From Adineta vaga (Eukaryota; Animalia; Rotifera): a DNA stretch of 64,000 nucleotides. Each line of letters begins with the position of its first letter. The first letter of the stretch is position 1. The stretch is taken from assembly GCA_021613535.1 (NCBI GenBank), contig CP075495.1, forward strand, positions 12,648,001 through 12,712,000, given 5' to 3'. Below, in pieces: positions 526-35,987 of this stretch. Below the pieces are notes generated by a model, which did not search any database, was not told the origin of the DNA, and saw only the letters and a program-made list of their open reading frames with translations. Made by a program: the position numbers and the translations under genes.

Positions 526-3500
526 ATGGATGGTAATTCAAACGATTTAAATCATCGGCAAGTATATCCACTCGATGAAATTAAGAATGCTAATGGCGCT
601 CATCAAACTCCAAATACATCGTCATCCAAGTATGACTTATTCTTCTAAAAAAAGGCACACTAGTTTGTCTTATTAAACTATTTTAGTATCAAAATGAAAG
701 ATATTTTCGAGAAAAAAGATGAGAGTGAAAAGAAGAATAAAGAACCTACACAAGTCGTCGGATTTTTAAGTCTTGTATGTTATATTTATATTCTTTTTGA
801 AGAAAATTCAACAAATGTTACATATAGTTTCGATTTGCCAATGGAAACGATTATTTATACATGATAGTTGGTACTTTTGCCGGTATAGAAATCATTTTTA
901 TACTAATATTTCTGTGCTTAATGAATATTTTTTTGATTATTTAGCACTAGCTCATGGGGCTGCATTTCCATTAAGTATATAATTGAGTAGAACAATAGAA
1001 CATACTTAAGAAATAATGTATTTAGTGTTATTGGTTTTTGGAAATGTCACAGATGTATTTACCGGTCGAACATTCGACTTATGTTCATTCAATTTCACAA
1101 TTTTTCAAGGTCGTTGTCCACCTGGTGTAGAATTAAATACAGAGAATTTTTTTACTGAATATGTGTATGTTTGTATTTTGTTTCTATTGAAAATTAATTT
1201 AATTTCTTCTTATAGCAAATGTAATCTGACTGGTTTAGATTTCCCTTTGCCCAATGTAGATTTTCTTGGAACGATTCGTCAACAATCATTATGGCTGACT
1301 AGTAAGTCACAATGTAGAGAAAGAGGAATACATCAAATATGAAAAGATTCATGGATAGATTTACAGTTGTCTTCTAACAGCTCATGTTTTATTATTCTTG
1401 AATAAGTTCAAGTTTCAAAAGTTTTGCATATAGGAAGACTGAAGCAGAATATGATTCTAAGAAAAATGAGATTATTTTCATACAAATGAATTCAAAAATC
1501 TAAATACATTGAAATCGAACATATCATCTCTTCCATTCTGATTTAAGCAAAAAAATCGATTGCATGTTATTTATTTAGTTATGGGATGTGGAACAATAGT
1601 GGTGGGATATTTTCAAGTTGCTTTCTGGTCTATTGCTTGTGAACGACAAACACGTCGTATTCGTGAAACACTGTTTCGATCAATACTTCATAAAGAAATT
1701 GCTTATTTTGATACCTATAAAACAGGTGAACTGAGTACAAGATTATCTGATGATGTTAACAAAGTTCATGATGGTATTGGAGACAAAGTCGGTTCAGCAT
1801 TACAATTTTTTGCTGGTTTTATTGCTGGTCTTGCTCTTGGGTAGATTTTTACAATATATATATACATATAGAGTTGTCTTTCAAGTCTGATCTTTTTTGT
1901 TTCTATTTAGATTGATCAAAGGATGGAAATTAACATTAGTGATACTTTCTGTTAGTCCATTGCTATTTTTCAGCGCAATGATCATTACAAAAGTATAGTC
2001 TCATGCACAAAAGAATAGATTGATATAAAATGTAATTACTTCTTTTATAGATAACTGCAAAAATGACTTCACAAGAATTGAAAGCCTATGCTAAAGCTGG
2101 TGCTGTTGCAGAAGAAGTATTGAGTAGTATACGAACTGTATTTTCATATAATGGTGCAGCTTATGAAGTGAAAAGGTAATAAATTCTATTTAATTTATTG
2201 ATATTTTGACACATTTCGTTTTCATTTAGATATGAAAAACATTTGAGAGCCGCCAAATTACGCGGTGTTCGAAAGGGAGTTTTTAATGGAGTATTAATGG
2301 GTACTATATTTTGTTTAATGTTTTGTACCTATGCATTGGTATGAAGATTTTGAGTATCTTAGCTTAGAAACTATACTTGAATTCATAGGGTTTTTGGTAT
2401 GGTGCAAAACTTGTTCGGGAAGAAGATTATTCTATTGGAGCAATTCTTATTGTAAATTTTATTCAGATATGAAAAAGAAACAATTTTCTAAAATTGATCT
2501 TTTTCTAATAGGTATTTTTTTCAATTATTACCGCAGTCTTTAGTCTTGGCCAAGCTGCTCCTCATTTACAATCCATGGCACAAGCTCGTGGTGCAGCTTT
2601 TACATTATGGACTATTATCGATACAGTATGCAACCATTGAACTTTCGAAGTTTTCAAAACAAAACCGAAGTATTTTCTGTTTTTAGCCATCGAAAATAAC
2701 TATAAGTAATACAGGTGGTACTAAAAAAGAGGATCTAACTGGTGACATACAATTTTCAAATGTTAACTTTGTTTATCCATCTCGACCTGATGTTCCTGTA
2801 CACAATAGTCTAAGCTTTACAGCTAAATCAGGTGAGACAACAGCACTTGTTGGTACATCGGGTTGTGGAAAGGTAACTATATGTTTTTGCTCATCTAAAT
2901 AGAAATGAAACATATCTTCATATATTTAGAGTACGTGTATGCAACTATTGCAACGATTCTATGATCCAATCGAAGGTACCGTTAAAATTGATGGTATTTC
3001 TGTTAATGAATATAATCTTACTTGGCTTCGACAACATATTGGTGTTGTATCTCAAGAACCCATTCTATTTCAATTAAGTATTAGAGAAAATATTCGTTTT
3101 GGAAGAATGGATGCTACACCAGATGAAATTGAAAAAGCGGCTAGAATGGCTAATGCACATGATTTTATCATAAATTTACCAGATAAATACAATACTCTTG
3201 TTGGTGAACGTGGTGCACAATTGAGTGGAGTATGTTTTTATAGAAATGATTTCATATAATTCTTTTTTTCCTCTTGTTCTTCTAGGGACAAAAACAACGA
3301 ATTGGTAAAATTGCATAAATCTTCTTTTGTGAAATGAACAAATTCTTTTCTTATAATTTATTTAGCTATTGCTCGAGCCCTCATTCGTAATCCACGCATT
3401 CTCTTACTTGACGAAGCAACTGTAAGATGAAAATAATTCCTTTGGAAATCATTGATAAACTATCGTTTTTGTCTTCTTTAGAGTGCACTCGATACGGAAA

Positions 3501-6500
3501 GTGAACGTGTAGTACAAGATGCTCTTGATCGTGCATCACAAGGTCGTACAACTATCGTTATTGCACATCGTTTATCAACGATTGTCAATGCATCTAAAAT
3601 TATTGTCCTTGATAAAGGTTCAGTTATCGAAGAAGGTAGAAATCAATGAAAATAACTGTTTGGATAAACGAAAGTTTTGTCTTCTGCTAGGAAATCATCA
3701 GACATTGATGGATGCAAGAGGTGTTTATCGTGGTCTAGTTGAAGCACAAAATTTACGTTTAAATAATGATGATGATGATGATGAAAAAGAATTGGATGAG
3801 AATGGCATGAAAAGTATGAAAGTTTTGTTATTCGTCATCTTTCTTCTTATGCTCTAGGAATGAATTTAATATTCAACATTTAGTTAAGAGAGGATTTATA
3901 TCTCATTCTTTTATTTTCAGAAATTCCTGTTTATGACCGAACGAGATCATTAAGTAATTCCAATCAATATCAAAAACAATTATCAACAGATGATAAAGAA
4001 GCAAATAAAACAGACGACAATGGAAAAGAATCTATCGAGGTAAATGTTTGATAGTTATCCTTATAACCACTATATAGTTTTGTGTGTTCAATTAATCAAT
4101 ATAATAGAAATTTCTTAGTAAGTATAACTAAAACAAGATCATCATATTATGTATCCAACAAACATATTCTTCCCAATATCGATATATACTTCTTTACACT
4201 AATTCACATCATTTTCTTAAAGATGACTACGACTTTTCTTGATCAGAAAGAAAGGATCAACTTGTAAAGTCTGTAAGATAATCTACATGTTGTATAATAT
4301 ATCGTCATCTTTTGCACGCTTTTGTTATCATTACACTGACATTTATATTATACAAACAAATCTATCGTACGATGTTTATGCTATCTTTTTAGTACACGGG
4401 ACCTTCACCATTTTTTACTATGCTTAAAATGAATCGTCCAGAATTACTCTATATTATATTTGGTTGTCTCGCATGTATTTGTAATGGAGGCAAGTTGTGA
4501 ATTGTTTTGACTATTGAAATCTTTCTTTTTTATTCTTGTCTAGGTGTTCAACCGGCATTTGGTGTGATTTTAAGTAAAGTTATTGCTGTAAGTTATGAAA
4601 CATCATCGAAAATATTTAATTAATCTTAATCTCAATTATTAAAGGTTTTTCAAACATGTGATGCAGGTGTTCAAGAACGTCGAATATTAATGTATATTTT
4701 AATTTTTATTGGTCTCGGATTTTTAATGCTTTTTACAATGTTTTTACAAGTAAATATGAAAGTATTCTATATGATAAAATTCTGTATGTAATGTTCGTTT
4801 TTTAGAGTTATCTTTTTGCAATGTCCGGTGAAGCATTAACACAACGTCTTCGTTCAAAAATCTTTCGGACTTTATTACGACAAGATGTTGCTTATTTCGA
4901 TGAACCTGATAATAATACGGGTGCTCTGTGTACTCGTCTTGCTACAGAAGCATCCGATGTTCAAGGAGTATGCATAGACGATTTGGATTTCTTTTCACTG
5001 AATTAAATATTTATTCAATTATTTATTGTAGGCAACTGGTATTCGAATTGGTACTATGTTACAAAATATTTCCAATCTTGGTGTTGGAATGATTTTAGCA
5101 TTTATTTATGGTTGGTCATTAACTTTAATTATGTTAGCTTTTGTTCCATTCATGATTATTGCTGGATTCTTACAAACATATCTCATGACTGGTTTTGCAA
5201 ATAATGTATGAATTAGAAAAAGAAGAATTAAAATATTGTTTTTTTTTCGTTTTGCTTATCCTTTAGGACAAGAAAGCATTGGAAAATGCCGGAAAAGTAT
5301 GTCGATTCAGTTCTATATAGATTTCTCACGATAATGTTTCGTTCATTATAGATTGCTGTTGAAGCTATATCAAATATTCGAACAGTAGTACAGTTAACTA
5401 AAGAGCAACATTTCGATGATGAATATAGTGAATTACTTAATTTACCTTTTCGGTATGTACGAAAAAAGATTTAGTAAAGTAATGATTACATATGTATATT
5501 TATATTGTTTGTTATAGAAACAGTTTGAAACGAGCACATGTTTTTGGAATACTATTCAGTTTTACGGATGCAGTAAGAATGATTTGAATTGAATTGAATT
5601 TGTTTTAATTAATTTTATTATATAAAAGATTATGTTTTTTGCACAAGCAGCCTTATTCAGTTTTGGAGCTTGGCGAGTTGAACAAGGAGCAATGACGTAT
5701 GAATATTTCATGAGATTATTTATTCTAATTCAATCTTCTTCCTTTTTTCTTTTAGTTTTGAAAATATTATGCTGTAAGTTTACAAAGTTTGTCTTGCAGT
5801 ATTTCTTTTATTATCTGTTCTATTTCATCAGTGTACTCAATTGTATACTATTTGGTGCCATGGCTGTAAGTCATTTGTCACATTCAATATAATGTATAAC
5901 GATTTGATTTTTAAAGGTCGGTCAAACAGCTTCAATGTCTCCAGATTATTCAAAAGCGATTGTATGTTTGAGTTTAAATTAGATGAACATTATTCTATAT
6001 GATGGGATTCTTCTAGGCATCATCGAAGAAAATCTTAGCTTTATTTCAACGTGAACCAGTTATTGATAATTCATCGAGTGCTGGAGAAATTATAGTAAGG
6101 AAAACAGGATGAAATGATGATTTGTTTTCATTGTTGATTTTCTTTTTCTCAAGAACAATTTTTATGGTCGAATCAATTTAAATAAACTCGAATTTTGTTA
6201 TCCTAATCGAACAAAAGTACAAGTTCTCAAAGATTTTCAATTAACTATTGAACCAAGTATGATTATATTCGTTTCATATTCGAAAAATTAATCTCATTTC
6301 ATTCAGATAAACAAATTGCACTTGTTGGTTCTTCGGGTTGTGGAAAAAGTACAATTATTCAACTACTCGAACATTTCTATAATCCAACAGATGGACAAAT
6401 AGTAAGTTGATTTAATTGAAAGAAGAACTACTTTCTCACCTATGTATTTTATAGTTAATTGATCAAAAAGATATTTCATCTTTAAATCTTCAATGGTGGA

Positions 6501-7121
6501 GAAGTCAAATAGGTTTTGTTAGTCAAGAACCAATTCTTTTTGATGCATCAATTCGAGATAATATTGCCTATGGTGATACGACAAGAGATATTCAAATGGA
6601 TGAAATTCAAGAAGCTGCTAAAAAAGCGAATATCAGTCGTTTTATTGAGAATTTACCAGAAAAATATGAGACCAATGTTGGTACCAAAGGAACACAATTA
6701 TCTGGTGGTGAAAAACAGCGAATTGGTAAAATTGCATAAATCTTCTTTTGTGAAATGAACAAATTCTTTTCTTATAATTTATTTAGCTATTGCTCGAGCC
6801 CTCATTCGTAATCCACGCATTCTCTTACTTGACGAAGCAACTGTAAGATGAAAATAATTCCTTTGGAAATCATTGATAAACTATCGTTTTTGTCTTCTAT
6901 AGAGTGCACTCGATACGGAAAGTGAACGTGTAGTACAAGATGCTCTTGATCGTGCATCACAAGGTCGTACAACTATCGTTATTGCACATCGTTTATCGAC
7001 TATACAAAATTCAGATCTTATTTGCGTTGTTCATCGTGGTCACATTGTTGAATCAGGTCGACATGAAGAGTTATTGGCACTTAAAGGGCATTATTATCGA
7101 TTGGCGCAAGCAAAAAAATGA
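526..7121 (+). CDS. ABCB1: ABCB1/MDR1-type P-glycoprotein, full transporter (TMD-NBD-TMD-NBD), about 30 short exons
   Basis: Spliced translation gives TMD1 ([33 protein letters not shown]). NBD1 has Walker A GTSGCGK|ST, Q-loop VSQEP, signature LSG|GQKQR, Walker B ILLLDEAT|SALD and AHRL. TMD2 contains [25 protein letters not shown], and NBD2 has [17 protein letters not shown] and [14 protein letters not shown] at 526, TGA at 7119-7121. Subfamily B is secure; exact orthology to ABCB1 is not. Confidence 0.95.
3298..3576 (+). repeat. Copy 1 of a 279-bp intragenic direct repeat (ABCB1 NBD1, includes introns 3305-3365 and 3422-3481)
   Basis: Identical to 6719-6997 at an offset of 3421 bp, except T3478 versus A6899. 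Confidence 0.95.
6719..6997 (+). repeat. Copy 2 of the 279-bp intragenic direct repeat (ABCB1 NBD2)
   Basis: Direct base-by-base comparison with 3298-3576 shows a single mismatch, located in an intron. Confidence 0.95.
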
Positions 7122-7372
7122 CATTTTATTTTCAAAGAGTTCTATTTTTTATTTAGCGAGGCTTATGTTTGCTGGTGATTTTCTTTTGCTTTATACGTTA
7201 GTTTTTTGAATAAATAAAAAACAACAATGATTTTGGATTGTATGTCGTATAACAAACAAGAAGAAGAAGAAGAAGAAGTGCGCGAAAACGCATACAAATA
7301 GAAATGAAAATATGTTTCTTGTTTTCTTTCAAAGTTCTTGACTTAAACTACTTTTTTAAGTAATATTTTTGT

Positions 7373-9099
7373 TTAATATGGTGAATAATTTGATGAGCCA
7401 CCATTGCCACGACTTGCGCCACGGTATGATCCGCCTCGACCACCACGGTATGAGCCACCTAAGTGAAAATAATGATAATCATTATGTGTTACTAATATAA
7501 TATTTACCTCGATCATCATTGTCTCGGAAAGAGTCTTCACCGCCACTATCGCGACCTACAAAAAATATTTTTAATAATCGAAACTATTATTTCATTTGTA
7601 TATATGTAGCAACGTACTGCGAAAGCCACCACCACCACGACGATTATCGGAAAATCCTCGTCCGCCACTTCCACTATCTGCATTACCCCATCGACCGCCA
7701 CTACCAGAATTGAAACCTGGACGGGGATTGCTATCCCAATTACTTCGGCCACCACGATAACCTGTTTTTTAAAAATACAATCGATTAATAAAATAAACTT
7801 ACTAGGGAAAAAATTTAATACGTACCACCTCGGCCACCACGACCATTGTTGTCATTACGAGGACGGCGTTGAGCAAATTGAACATGTACAGATCCACCGA
7901 TTGAATCAATATGTTGATCTATTGAAATAATTAAACAATCAAGTAATTAAATACAATAAAATTTACCATTATATTGTGCAATTGCTCGATTGGCAGTATC
8001 TTCATCTTCATAAGTTACTGTGGCACGGCCATTTCCTTCACCAGTATCACGATCCTTGTAGATCCAAATTTTTGGACCACCTGATCGATCATCTGTCTAC
8101 AAAAATAAAATCTATAGTTTTAAAATGTCCCTTGATAGACATTAACTTACTTTAATGGTTCCAACGGTTGAAAAAGCATCAAAGATCTGATCGCGTGTAA
8201 TATCCTTCGGTAAATTTTGGATGAAAATTGCATCTCGAAGAATTTCTACATCCCCGCTATCTCTATTTTGTTGGCGAAATCCATAGCCACCGCCGCCGCT
8301 GCCGCCACGTCCTAAAATATCAATAATAGATGTAAACTTCATGGTCGAAAAGCAAATTCATATCCCAAAGAACGATACAAAACAAAATTTTTCGTCTCTA
8401 ATTATCAGTCAAAAAAATACATCTTTCAAAATTAAATCAATTTTTTTTTCTATATGTTCTTTTTTTTCAAAATTCAAATCAGTAATATCTAAACTGGATC
8501 CAACGGGCATATAAATCTTACTTGAATTATTATTTCCGAATGACCCACCATATGATCCACTATTGGAAGATAGAAATCAAAATAATCATCAAACATCATA
8601 TCATACATAAAAATAGGTGTAAATTTTTATAATATCAGTATATAGTTTTTTTGTTTACCATTTCTACCAATGTCTTACTTCAATTTCTTTTCTGTATTAT
8701 TCAAGTACTTGTATGAATATAGATTTTTTTAAATAATAGAGAACTTTTTATTTTTGATTGATTTGTTCCAAAAAATAAAAGTACACTGATGTTCGTGTAT
8801 ATATATATATATATGTGTGTATATAGTTTTTCAAACGAAAATAAAAAGATTGTATTGATATTATTAATCGATAGATAAAAAAAACTAATATAACGAATGA
8901 AGCTTACCCTCCTCTAGGACCATTGTCATCATCATCATTGGAACGAGAATAGCCGCCACGCGATGAACCTGATAAATTTATTTATTTATTTTTCAATAGA
9001 ACTAAAAATACATGGGCTGAACATACCGCCACGAGATCCAGAGCTCCAAACATTTCCACTACTACCTTCATTTGAATTCATACCGCCGTTAAAAGCCAT
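7373..9099 (-). CDS. FET-family (FUS/EWSR1/TAF15/cabeza-like) RNA-binding protein: RRM plus RGG boxes
   Basis: The RRM DAIFIQNLPKDITRDQIFDAFSTVGTIK|TDDRSGGPKIWIYKDRDTGEGNGRATVTYEDEDTANRAIAQYN has the FET-type extended loop. It is flanked by RGG/YRGG repeats, and the protein ends ...SRGNGGSSNYSPY* (PY-NLS-like). ATG at 9099, TAA at 7373-7375. Confidence 0.85.
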
Positions 9100-34619: not shown

Positions 34620-35987
34620 TCATTTACGGCTTTTTTTGCTAGAACCACCACCAGACTTTCGAGCTTTTTTCGTCGGTGAAGAATTATTTGAATCTAGAAT
34701 AGAAAGAAAAACAAAGATAGAACCTTCTTCTTTGATTAGAATCGTTGTATGCTTACTGTTTCCTGATCGTTTGTTTGAAGATTTCGATCGTTGTTGTTCA
34801 CCATCGGTTCCCGATTCATCTTCAGTATTATTTTGAGATCCTTGTCGTTTTTGACCACCTTTAGCTCGTCCACCTTGTTCATCTTCGCTTGCGGTACTTT
34901 GATCATTTTTATCTTGTTGATTTTTTTTAGAATTTTTTGATTTATTTGGTGAACGTGATGTTGATCGACGAGCTGCATTGCTCTTTTGACGACCACCAGA
35001 TTTCGTTTTACTTGGTGAACGAGATTGATTTTGTGGTGGTTTATTATTTTTACGGCCATCACTTGTTTTACTTTTGCTTGTCGATCGTGATCGATTGTTC
35101 TTACTTGGTGAACGAGATTGATTTTGTGGTGGCTTGTTATTTTTACGACCATCACTTGCTTTATTTTTGCTTGATGATCTTGATCGACTTTGTGATCGAT
35201 TATTTTTACTTGTTGATCGGGATTGATTTTGTGGTGGTTTGTTGTTTTTACGACCATCGGATTTTTTTGATTTACTTGGTGATCGACTGTTCGATTTGCT
35301 ACTGGTACGACGACCTTCAGTTGATGGACTTCGTCGAGCAGATCGAGATCGTGAGCGGGAAGGTGATGATGACGATGATTTTTTATTATTTCCTTTTCTT
35401 CCCTTGGCGGCCATTCTGTAATAACCATTACTATAGCTCGTACCTATTAAACATTATATTTGTTTTTAAAAACAAGATAATTAATCAAGCAAGAATTTTA
35501 CCGCTAGCAAGTGATATAACACTGTCTTCAAGAAGTGCTTCAAGTGCTGAACGAAGATGACTCTAAAATATCAAAATATTATCATTGATTGGAAAAAGAA
35601 TTATATTGTCAGTATCTTACATTAACACCTTTACCACTGTTGACTCCATACGTATTTTTGATATGATTCAAGATTTTTGATCGACTTGAACCTTTACGCG
35701 AATCAAGCTACAAAAGTAAAGATGTTCATCGTATTTCTATCATATATAAGTGTTTAATTTATTACTGTTGCAAGTGCTTCGGTAACCATTCGTTGATAAT
35801 TTGGATGTTTTGATGATGAACCAGTTCGTTGATTGGAGTTGGATTTTTTCGGTGATTTTGATTGTTTTTTATTTGGTGAACTATTATTTTGTGATGATTT
35901 AGCTTTCATTGGTGATCCAACTTTAGTTTGTTTCGATGTTTGACTCGACGATTTCGAATTGCTCGATGTCTTTTTAGCAGATGCCAT
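34620..35987 (-). CDS. Linker histone H1/H5-like protein (H15 winged helix) with long Ser/Arg/Lys-rich repetitive tails
   Basis: Spliced globular domain HPNYQRMVTEALAT|LDSRKGSSRSKILNHIKNTYGVNSGKGVN|SHLRSALEALLEDSVISLASG|TSYSNGYYRM. The N-tail has SPMK/SPNK/SPKK, and the C-tail has SRSRSRS and SRSPSK repeats. Confidence 0.85.
35010..35265 (-). repeat. Three imperfect coding repeats of SDGRKNNKPPQNQSRS(T/P)SK in the H1-like tail
   Basis: The + strand motif gattgattttgtggtgg(t/c)tt(a/g)tt(a/g)tttttacg(a/g)ccatc recurs at about 35023, 35116 and 35221. Confidence 0.9.

Follow-up and report, generated by a model that had tools for sequence, protein, structure and literature searches.

Ectopic conversion between paralogous genes is described as a source of concerted evolution of conserved domains (e.g. 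PMC2720389, PMC12042744). The gene discussed here, an ABCB1-like transporter of the rotifer Adineta vaga, resembles such conversions in several ways: a short, sharp-edged tract has been homogenised together with its introns and silent sites, the copies group by gene over orthology, and the phenomenon recurs in separate lineages. It differs in that a single gene provides both donor and recipient: these are domains of two halves that, outside the tract, are 20-56% identical in protein and have no intron positions in common. Homogenisation within one gene is also known from the repeats of spidroins (PMC3933166, PMC3563967). There, long tandem arrays are involved, whereas the rotifer gene contains two non-adjacent, anciently diverged enzyme domains that are homogenised over a 279-bp patch only.

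For the transfer of introns between paralogs, three events had been listed by 2012 (in Mycosphaerella, Aspergillus and Chironomus), all on indirect evidence (Yenerall and Zhou 2012, PMC3443670). The process was defined in that review for separate paralogs and lacked an in vivo demonstration. The likeness lies in recombination carrying an intron to the same site in the other copy. In the rotifers, however, up to four positions are candidates for a transfer between the two halves of a single gene, and the site also shows a recent conversion that spans introns. Compared with the three indirect cases of 2012, the rotifer locus thus offers a series of candidate transfers together with a recent, still polymorphic, intron-spanning conversion. 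In A. vaga itself, homologous recombination between homologs leaves conversion tracts whose length ranges from about 100 bp up to a few kb (PMC13564844).

Outside most subscription journals, no literature on conversion between the halves of P-glycoproteins was found. The rotifer gene departs from ordinary ectopic conversion in that both partners are anciently diverged parts of a single gene, that one and the same intron was affected in at least two species, and that candidate cases of intron transfer are found at the site. Anciently duplicated domains can still template each other's repair where protein constraint keeps their DNA alike. Such half-to-half templating would bias any tree, date or intron-age argument in which NBD1 is compared with NBD2.

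The transporter gene and its 279-nt tract

The gene extends from 526 to 7122 on the plus strand of the window (the whole 64,000-nt stretch of DNA that was analysed). The spliced model is intact and counts 37 exons; its product of 1322 aa matches the NCBI Adineta vaga protein I4U23_009695 without a difference. Its domain order is TMD1-NBD1-TMD2-NBD2, and a single chain carries two ABC_membrane (PF00664) and two ABC_tran (PF00005) Pfam domains, as in a full transporter. All motifs are intact in NBD1 and NBD2, respectively: Walker A (aa 475/1117), signature (aa 579/1223), Walker B (aa 599/1243), D-loop (aa 607/1251) and H-loop (aa 633/1277). The signature of NBD2 is LSGGE, which is also found in several orthologs. 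The protein is about 50% identical to vertebrate ABCB1 and shares the TMD-NBD-TMD-NBD layout and all NBD motifs with the ABCB1/MDR1 P-glycoprotein. It differs from the latter as a member of a bdelloid-specific subfamily with 36 short introns. Judged by family alone, ATP-driven efflux of xenobiotics is its predicted function. The nearest paralog (71% identical in NBD1) belongs to the sister clade and is located on C4; the homoeologous chromosome 5 yielded no member of the subfamily.

Many splice joints of the model between 4487 and 6154 are seen in RNA-type contigs. The same type of contig shows a 54-nt skip at 4490-4543, the position of a GC-AG intron. Within intron 18, the alleles differ at six positions in the 46 nt of 3845-3890, a density that far exceeds the genome mean of 1.7%. 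An RRM and RGG-rich gene on the minus strand (7400-8950) converges on the transporter. An RRM gene is found at the same place in the A. ricciae and Rotaria loci, and the downstream neighbour is common to several orthologs. Elsewhere in the window (34942-35292), four degenerate 87-nt repeats lie within overlapping long ORFs on both strands (34620-35560); they probably represent a low-complexity protein region.

The original prediction drew attention to two stretches of the gene that match at 278 of 279 bases, two full introns included, and this match was confirmed. Copy 1 (3298-3576, plus strand) encodes aa 586-638 of NBD1, from the end of the signature helix through Walker B and the D-loop to the H-loop. 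Copy 2 (6719-6997, plus strand) encodes aa 1230-1282 of NBD2 and lies 3421 bp from copy 1 in the same reading frame. The claim that the tract spans these three motifs is therefore correct. When intron positions are counted in nt from the L of LSGG, intron A is located at +28 (phase 1, QRI/A, the slash marking the intron) and intron B at +84 (phase 0, EAT/S). Intron A measures 61 nt and is identical in NBD1 (3305-3365) and NBD2 (6726-6786). Intron B measures 60 nt, and 59 of these are identical between NBD1 (3422-3481) and NBD2 (6843-6902). The sole mismatch of the tract (T at 3478, A at 6899) is found here, four bases from the 3' end of the intron.

Both ends of the tract lie where homology between the halves gives out. 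Upstream, an intron present only in NBD1 (3230-3285, plus strand, LSG/GQ, +9) forms a heterology block 12 nt before the 5' end. Downstream lie the residues that follow the H-loop, which differ between the halves in every ortholog. This intron and the flank differences (LSGGQ against LSGGE, STIVNAS against STIQNSD) were found as predicted. The tract pair is the only comparable repeat in the window, and no more than these two copies occur in the genome. Among the other ABCB loci fetched, the identity between a gene's own halves ranges from 66 to 78% and never exceeds 78%. Given a background identity of 85%, the probability that the tract arose by chance is about 1e-18. The halves thus share a bounded tract, silent and intronic sites included, that is far more alike than its flanks.

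Conversion between the two NBDs

Recurrent non-allelic gene conversion between the two NBDs of this one ABCB1-like gene explains the tract, and this explanation is held with high confidence. It agrees with the recent ectopic conversion between NBD1 and NBD2 that was originally proposed. Initially, one NBD would suffer a break or nick in its DNA, and repair would be templated by the other NBD, 3.4 kb away on the same chromatid, the sister or the homolog, with a non-crossover outcome. Copying would extend while the halves stay alike and would halt at the NBD1-only intron upstream and at the post-H-loop divergence downstream. As copying is limited by the likeness of the halves, short introns inside the zone would be overwritten whole. 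The recent event would have overwritten intron sequence with no intron being added. The repair pathway and any involvement of desiccation are presumed only; a link between desiccation and the rate of conversion was questioned (PMC5916493). Since breaks are inducible in A. vaga, the mechanism is directly testable.

Overall, the rotifer tract works like ordinary ectopic conversion, with mixed signs of its donor. Eight of its diagnostic sites are NBD1-type and six are NBD2-type, and the tree of the tract has too little resolution to name a donor. Diagnostic sites that alter an amino acid (NPR in place of NPK, QDA, DRA) are NBD1-type, and five silent ones are NBD2-type. Conversion probably ran more than once and in both directions, a reading that the near saturation of the silent sites makes weak.

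The mosaic of NBD1-type and NBD2-type sites could also be expected from a reciprocal exchange (double unequal crossover) or from a recent re-duplication of one half. In-frame direct repeats permit unequal exchange, and non-allelic recombination has been proposed for structural variants of A. vaga (PMC13564844). A double crossover within 279 bp is less parsimonious than a single conversion, however, and a re-duplication is excluded by the ancient states kept at 15 of the 19 domain-diagnostic sites outside the tract, next to the low protein identity and unshared intron positions of the remaining halves. Both variants are accordingly considered quite unlikely. With both copies in the same frame, a deletion between the two would be predicted to leave a half transporter of 678 aa, a simple product for an in-frame repeat of 279 bp.

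It is less probable still that the tract is an artefact of assembly or polishing, in which the reads of one copy overwrote the other. The reference assembly is indeed a collapsed haploid, the alleles truly differ in the 5' part of the tract, and the sole mismatch at 6899 is not seen among the mapped contigs. To look at both copies, the contigs of four public runs were mapped to 3430-6850, an interval that holds each half of the repeat once. These are assembled short-read contigs with collapsed bubbles, and the DNA-type runs of 2013 and 2022 come from different studies. In both runs, contigs end at the tract boundaries, and a 179-nt core (6819-6997, plus strand, equal to 3398-3576) is a single contig with 3.1-3.3 haplotype depths. 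Its depth is 225 against 110-116 on the flanks in 2013, and 65.7 against 31.7 in 2022. The downstream NBD1 contig begins at 3547, 30 bases ahead of the tract end, as expected for a repeat boundary. At the 5' end, one 130-nt contig, identical to the reference and with about two haplotype depths, is entered from either half: from a 61-nt contig that carries the NBD2 flank, and from one of 40 nt that has the signature of the NBD1 flank (differences at 6709, 6710 and 6718). An RNA-type contig moreover reads from TMD2 through the spliced NBD2 tract. The doubled depth of the core, the breaks at the tract ends and the flank junctions of both halves, seen in two independent DNA-type runs, rule out an assembly collapse of the tract. 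The misassembly that the original prediction had named as its possible undoing is thereby contradicted, as both copies are supported by the contigs of 2013 and 2022. A merger by polishing would also require halves that are much closer than those of the orthologs, which are 15-25% apart in exon bases and have unalignable introns. Likewise, the introns of A. steineri (see below) are alike and not identical, so that they cannot result from collapse.

Purifying selection alone has practically no claim on the likeness. No part of the NBD is more conserved than the tract, with 41-51 of 55 residues the same between the halves of other ABCB proteins, but selection on protein cannot equalise introns and silent sites, and synonymous codon differences in this segment number 11-29 in other genes and none within the A. 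vaga tract. The near-identical introns could be due to selection only if their sequence had a function of its own, and it is not conserved between species.

Conversion between the NBDs probably had a negligible effect on the pump. It was claimed that the catalytic core had been homogenised, which overstates the consequence. In the orthologs, 46-51 of the 55 residues in the tract region are already identical between the halves, and all catalytic residues are the same, so the A. vaga event would probably have been close to neutral.

Alleles and other species

In the 5' part of the tract, the reference, which shows one allele class, is unlike at least one further allele of NBD1. This second NBD1-type path is visible among the contigs as 120 nt at one haplotype depth, with seven bases off the reference, one of which is the flank difference. 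Over intron A, the second NBD1 allele displays about 6 substitutions in 115 nt and a 5-nt deletion. The path continues into a 45-nt contig with two haplotype depths and one other letter, presumably at 6818. From the contig geometry, this polymorphic site (6818, plus strand, equivalent to 3397) would have two states, each with two haplotype depths. One NBD1 path and one NBD2 path lead into the reference state, and the other state is thereby left to the remaining two copies. The contigs do not display the fourth path (over intron A, the second allele of NBD2).

As the variant tracks halves and not alleles, the conversion would be later than the split of the alleles. The geometry and depth of the contig graph indicate that the full tract is carried by one allele class only, and the conversion is accordingly read from this graph as younger than the allele split. 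The 179-nt core is read as common to all four copies (two halves, two alleles). Together, geometry and depth suggest at least two events, one that left the 3' core on all four copies and one that left the longer tract on a single class. The alleles of the flanks differ at roughly 1.5-2% of sites, and the tract copies at 1 in 279. The published mean for allelic divergence in A. vaga is 1.7%, and a chromosome-level assembly of the species is available (PMC8494291).

The ortholog loci compared are those of A. ricciae (two), A. steineri (two), Rotaria sp. Silwood1, Silwood2, R. sordida (two) and R. socialis, with one further ortholog on a moss-metagenome contig that contains both halves. In the tree of NBD DNA upstream of the tract, the sequences split by domain (100/100 support). 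Within the tract the NBD1 and NBD2 of A. vaga are identical, while most of the tree is poorly resolved. The A. vaga copies thus group by gene inside the tract and by domain upstream of it.

A second case is found in A. steineri. Between the intron B of its NBD1 and NBD2, 34 of 44 core bases align (score 0.51), which exceeds all 462 null pairs (null maximum 0.29; shuffle p 0.0002); two assemblies show this likeness. Orthologous introns are saturated between Adineta species (mean -0.02 to 0.06, maximum 0.22), and the homogenisation in A. steineri is therefore a separate, older event. In A. ricciae, the intron B halves score 0.13 and 0.17 (p 0.004 and 0.001, uncorrected for about 17 tests), values that fall within the range of orthologous introns between species. 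Its exons contain a run of shared diagnostic sites around intron B, and the signal of homogenisation is weak, at most suggestive. The predicted concerted evolution within one gene is borne out by the A. steineri event and, weakly, by A. ricciae. As to the expectation that copies would cluster by species and not by domain, the A. vaga tract and the A. steineri intron B do group by gene, and the tract introns of Rotaria cluster by domain.

Likeness within the gene at the tract introns was found neither in the Rotaria orthologs and the moss-metagenome ortholog nor in 15 A. vaga paralog loci. Half-to-half conversion as a general property of all ABCB genes covered here was rejected, with none of the 15 paralog loci being alike at the tract introns. 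One -36 intron pair among the A. vaga paralogs reaches a z of 3.0, about what 30-odd tests yield. The moss metagenome provided three contigs, and the one with both halves showed no within-gene intron similarity. In the search for both halves in a wild close relative (P0002), a 1.1-kb contig at 79% identity without the NBDs was obtained.

The NBD1 intron A of one A. steineri locus (L028) measures 1230 nt, compared to about 60 elsewhere, and includes an 11-nt tandem array of about 19 copies. The other locus (L042) has the same 3' end in this intron. The long intron A may have limited conversion in A. steineri to the intron B side.

Introns in both halves

The original prediction suggested that the recent conversion may have copied introns into the other half. 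This part did not stand for the recent event: every ortholog read, from Adineta to Rotaria, has introns A and B in NBD1 as well as in NBD2, and intron gain through the recent tract was consequently rejected. Only for much older events is intron copying supported, and indirectly. The proposed comparison of intron positions among paralogs brought out four positions that are matched across the halves.

The intron map covers rotifer genes. In the clade of the transporter, +28 and +84 occur in both halves and -36 is missing from both; among the loci mapped, +84 is exclusive to the transporter's subfamily. In a second clade (six A. vaga genes), -36, +28 and +79 are found in both halves. In a third clade, -36 and +25 are found in both, except for one NBD2 (L011) without +25. 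None of the positions +25, +28, +79 and +84 is present in three other A. vaga paralogs or in one gene from Didymodactylos, which branches off at the second clade's base. These four positions are thus lineage-specific and sit nevertheless in both diverged halves, as would be left by an older transfer.

Intron transfer between the halves by conversion is the explanation that is leaned towards for these matched positions. Parallel independent gain, or inheritance from before the duplication of the halves, is possible but doubtful. Human ABCB1 is not known to contain the four bdelloid positions. Donor sites c.1554 and c.1725 of that gene are on record (PMC10507719). It does have two intron pairs at matching NBD positions (PMC4854269), which speaks for parallel gain or inheritance. 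The Didymodactylos gene moreover has fewer introns overall, with about 24 exons mapped in a model that is partial, so its introns could have been lost. On the other hand, the four half-matched positions all fall in a 170-nt zone that lies within the converted zone, and the only half-to-half matches in the transporter are its tract introns, against 0 of 15 elsewhere (Fisher p 0.007). The positions +25/+28 and +79/+84 are mutually exclusive, subfamily-specific and only 3 and 5 nt apart, and can hardly be jointly ancestral; a gain or a sliding must have reached both halves. The site of +84, finally, is not an AG/G proto-splice site.

From the candidate transfers between halves a broader reading is proposed, somewhat more probable than its denial. 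The signature-to-H-loop segment of bdelloid ABCB full transporters would be a long-lived zone of half-to-half conversion, in which introns were repeatedly copied or erased until four subfamily-specific positions stood in both NBDs. The A. vaga tract would be the same process, still polymorphic, and the matched NBD introns of other P-glycoproteins, human ABCB1 included, might be old transfers.

Another NBD1 intron, at +145, is retained by the second clade, by Didymodactylos and by the basal member of the transporter's clade, from R. sordida (L035). It is missing from the A. vaga transporter (3482-3635) and its other orthologs. This absence fits a loss of the intron by conversion from the intron-less NBD2.

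A longer tract is found between two tandem P-glycoprotein paralogs on C6 (about 10.02-10.03 Mb). Over NBD1, L010:4063-5102 and L011:3595-4622 are 90% identical along 1046 bp, compared to 66-78% outside this tract. It is likely the product of an older conversion between genes.
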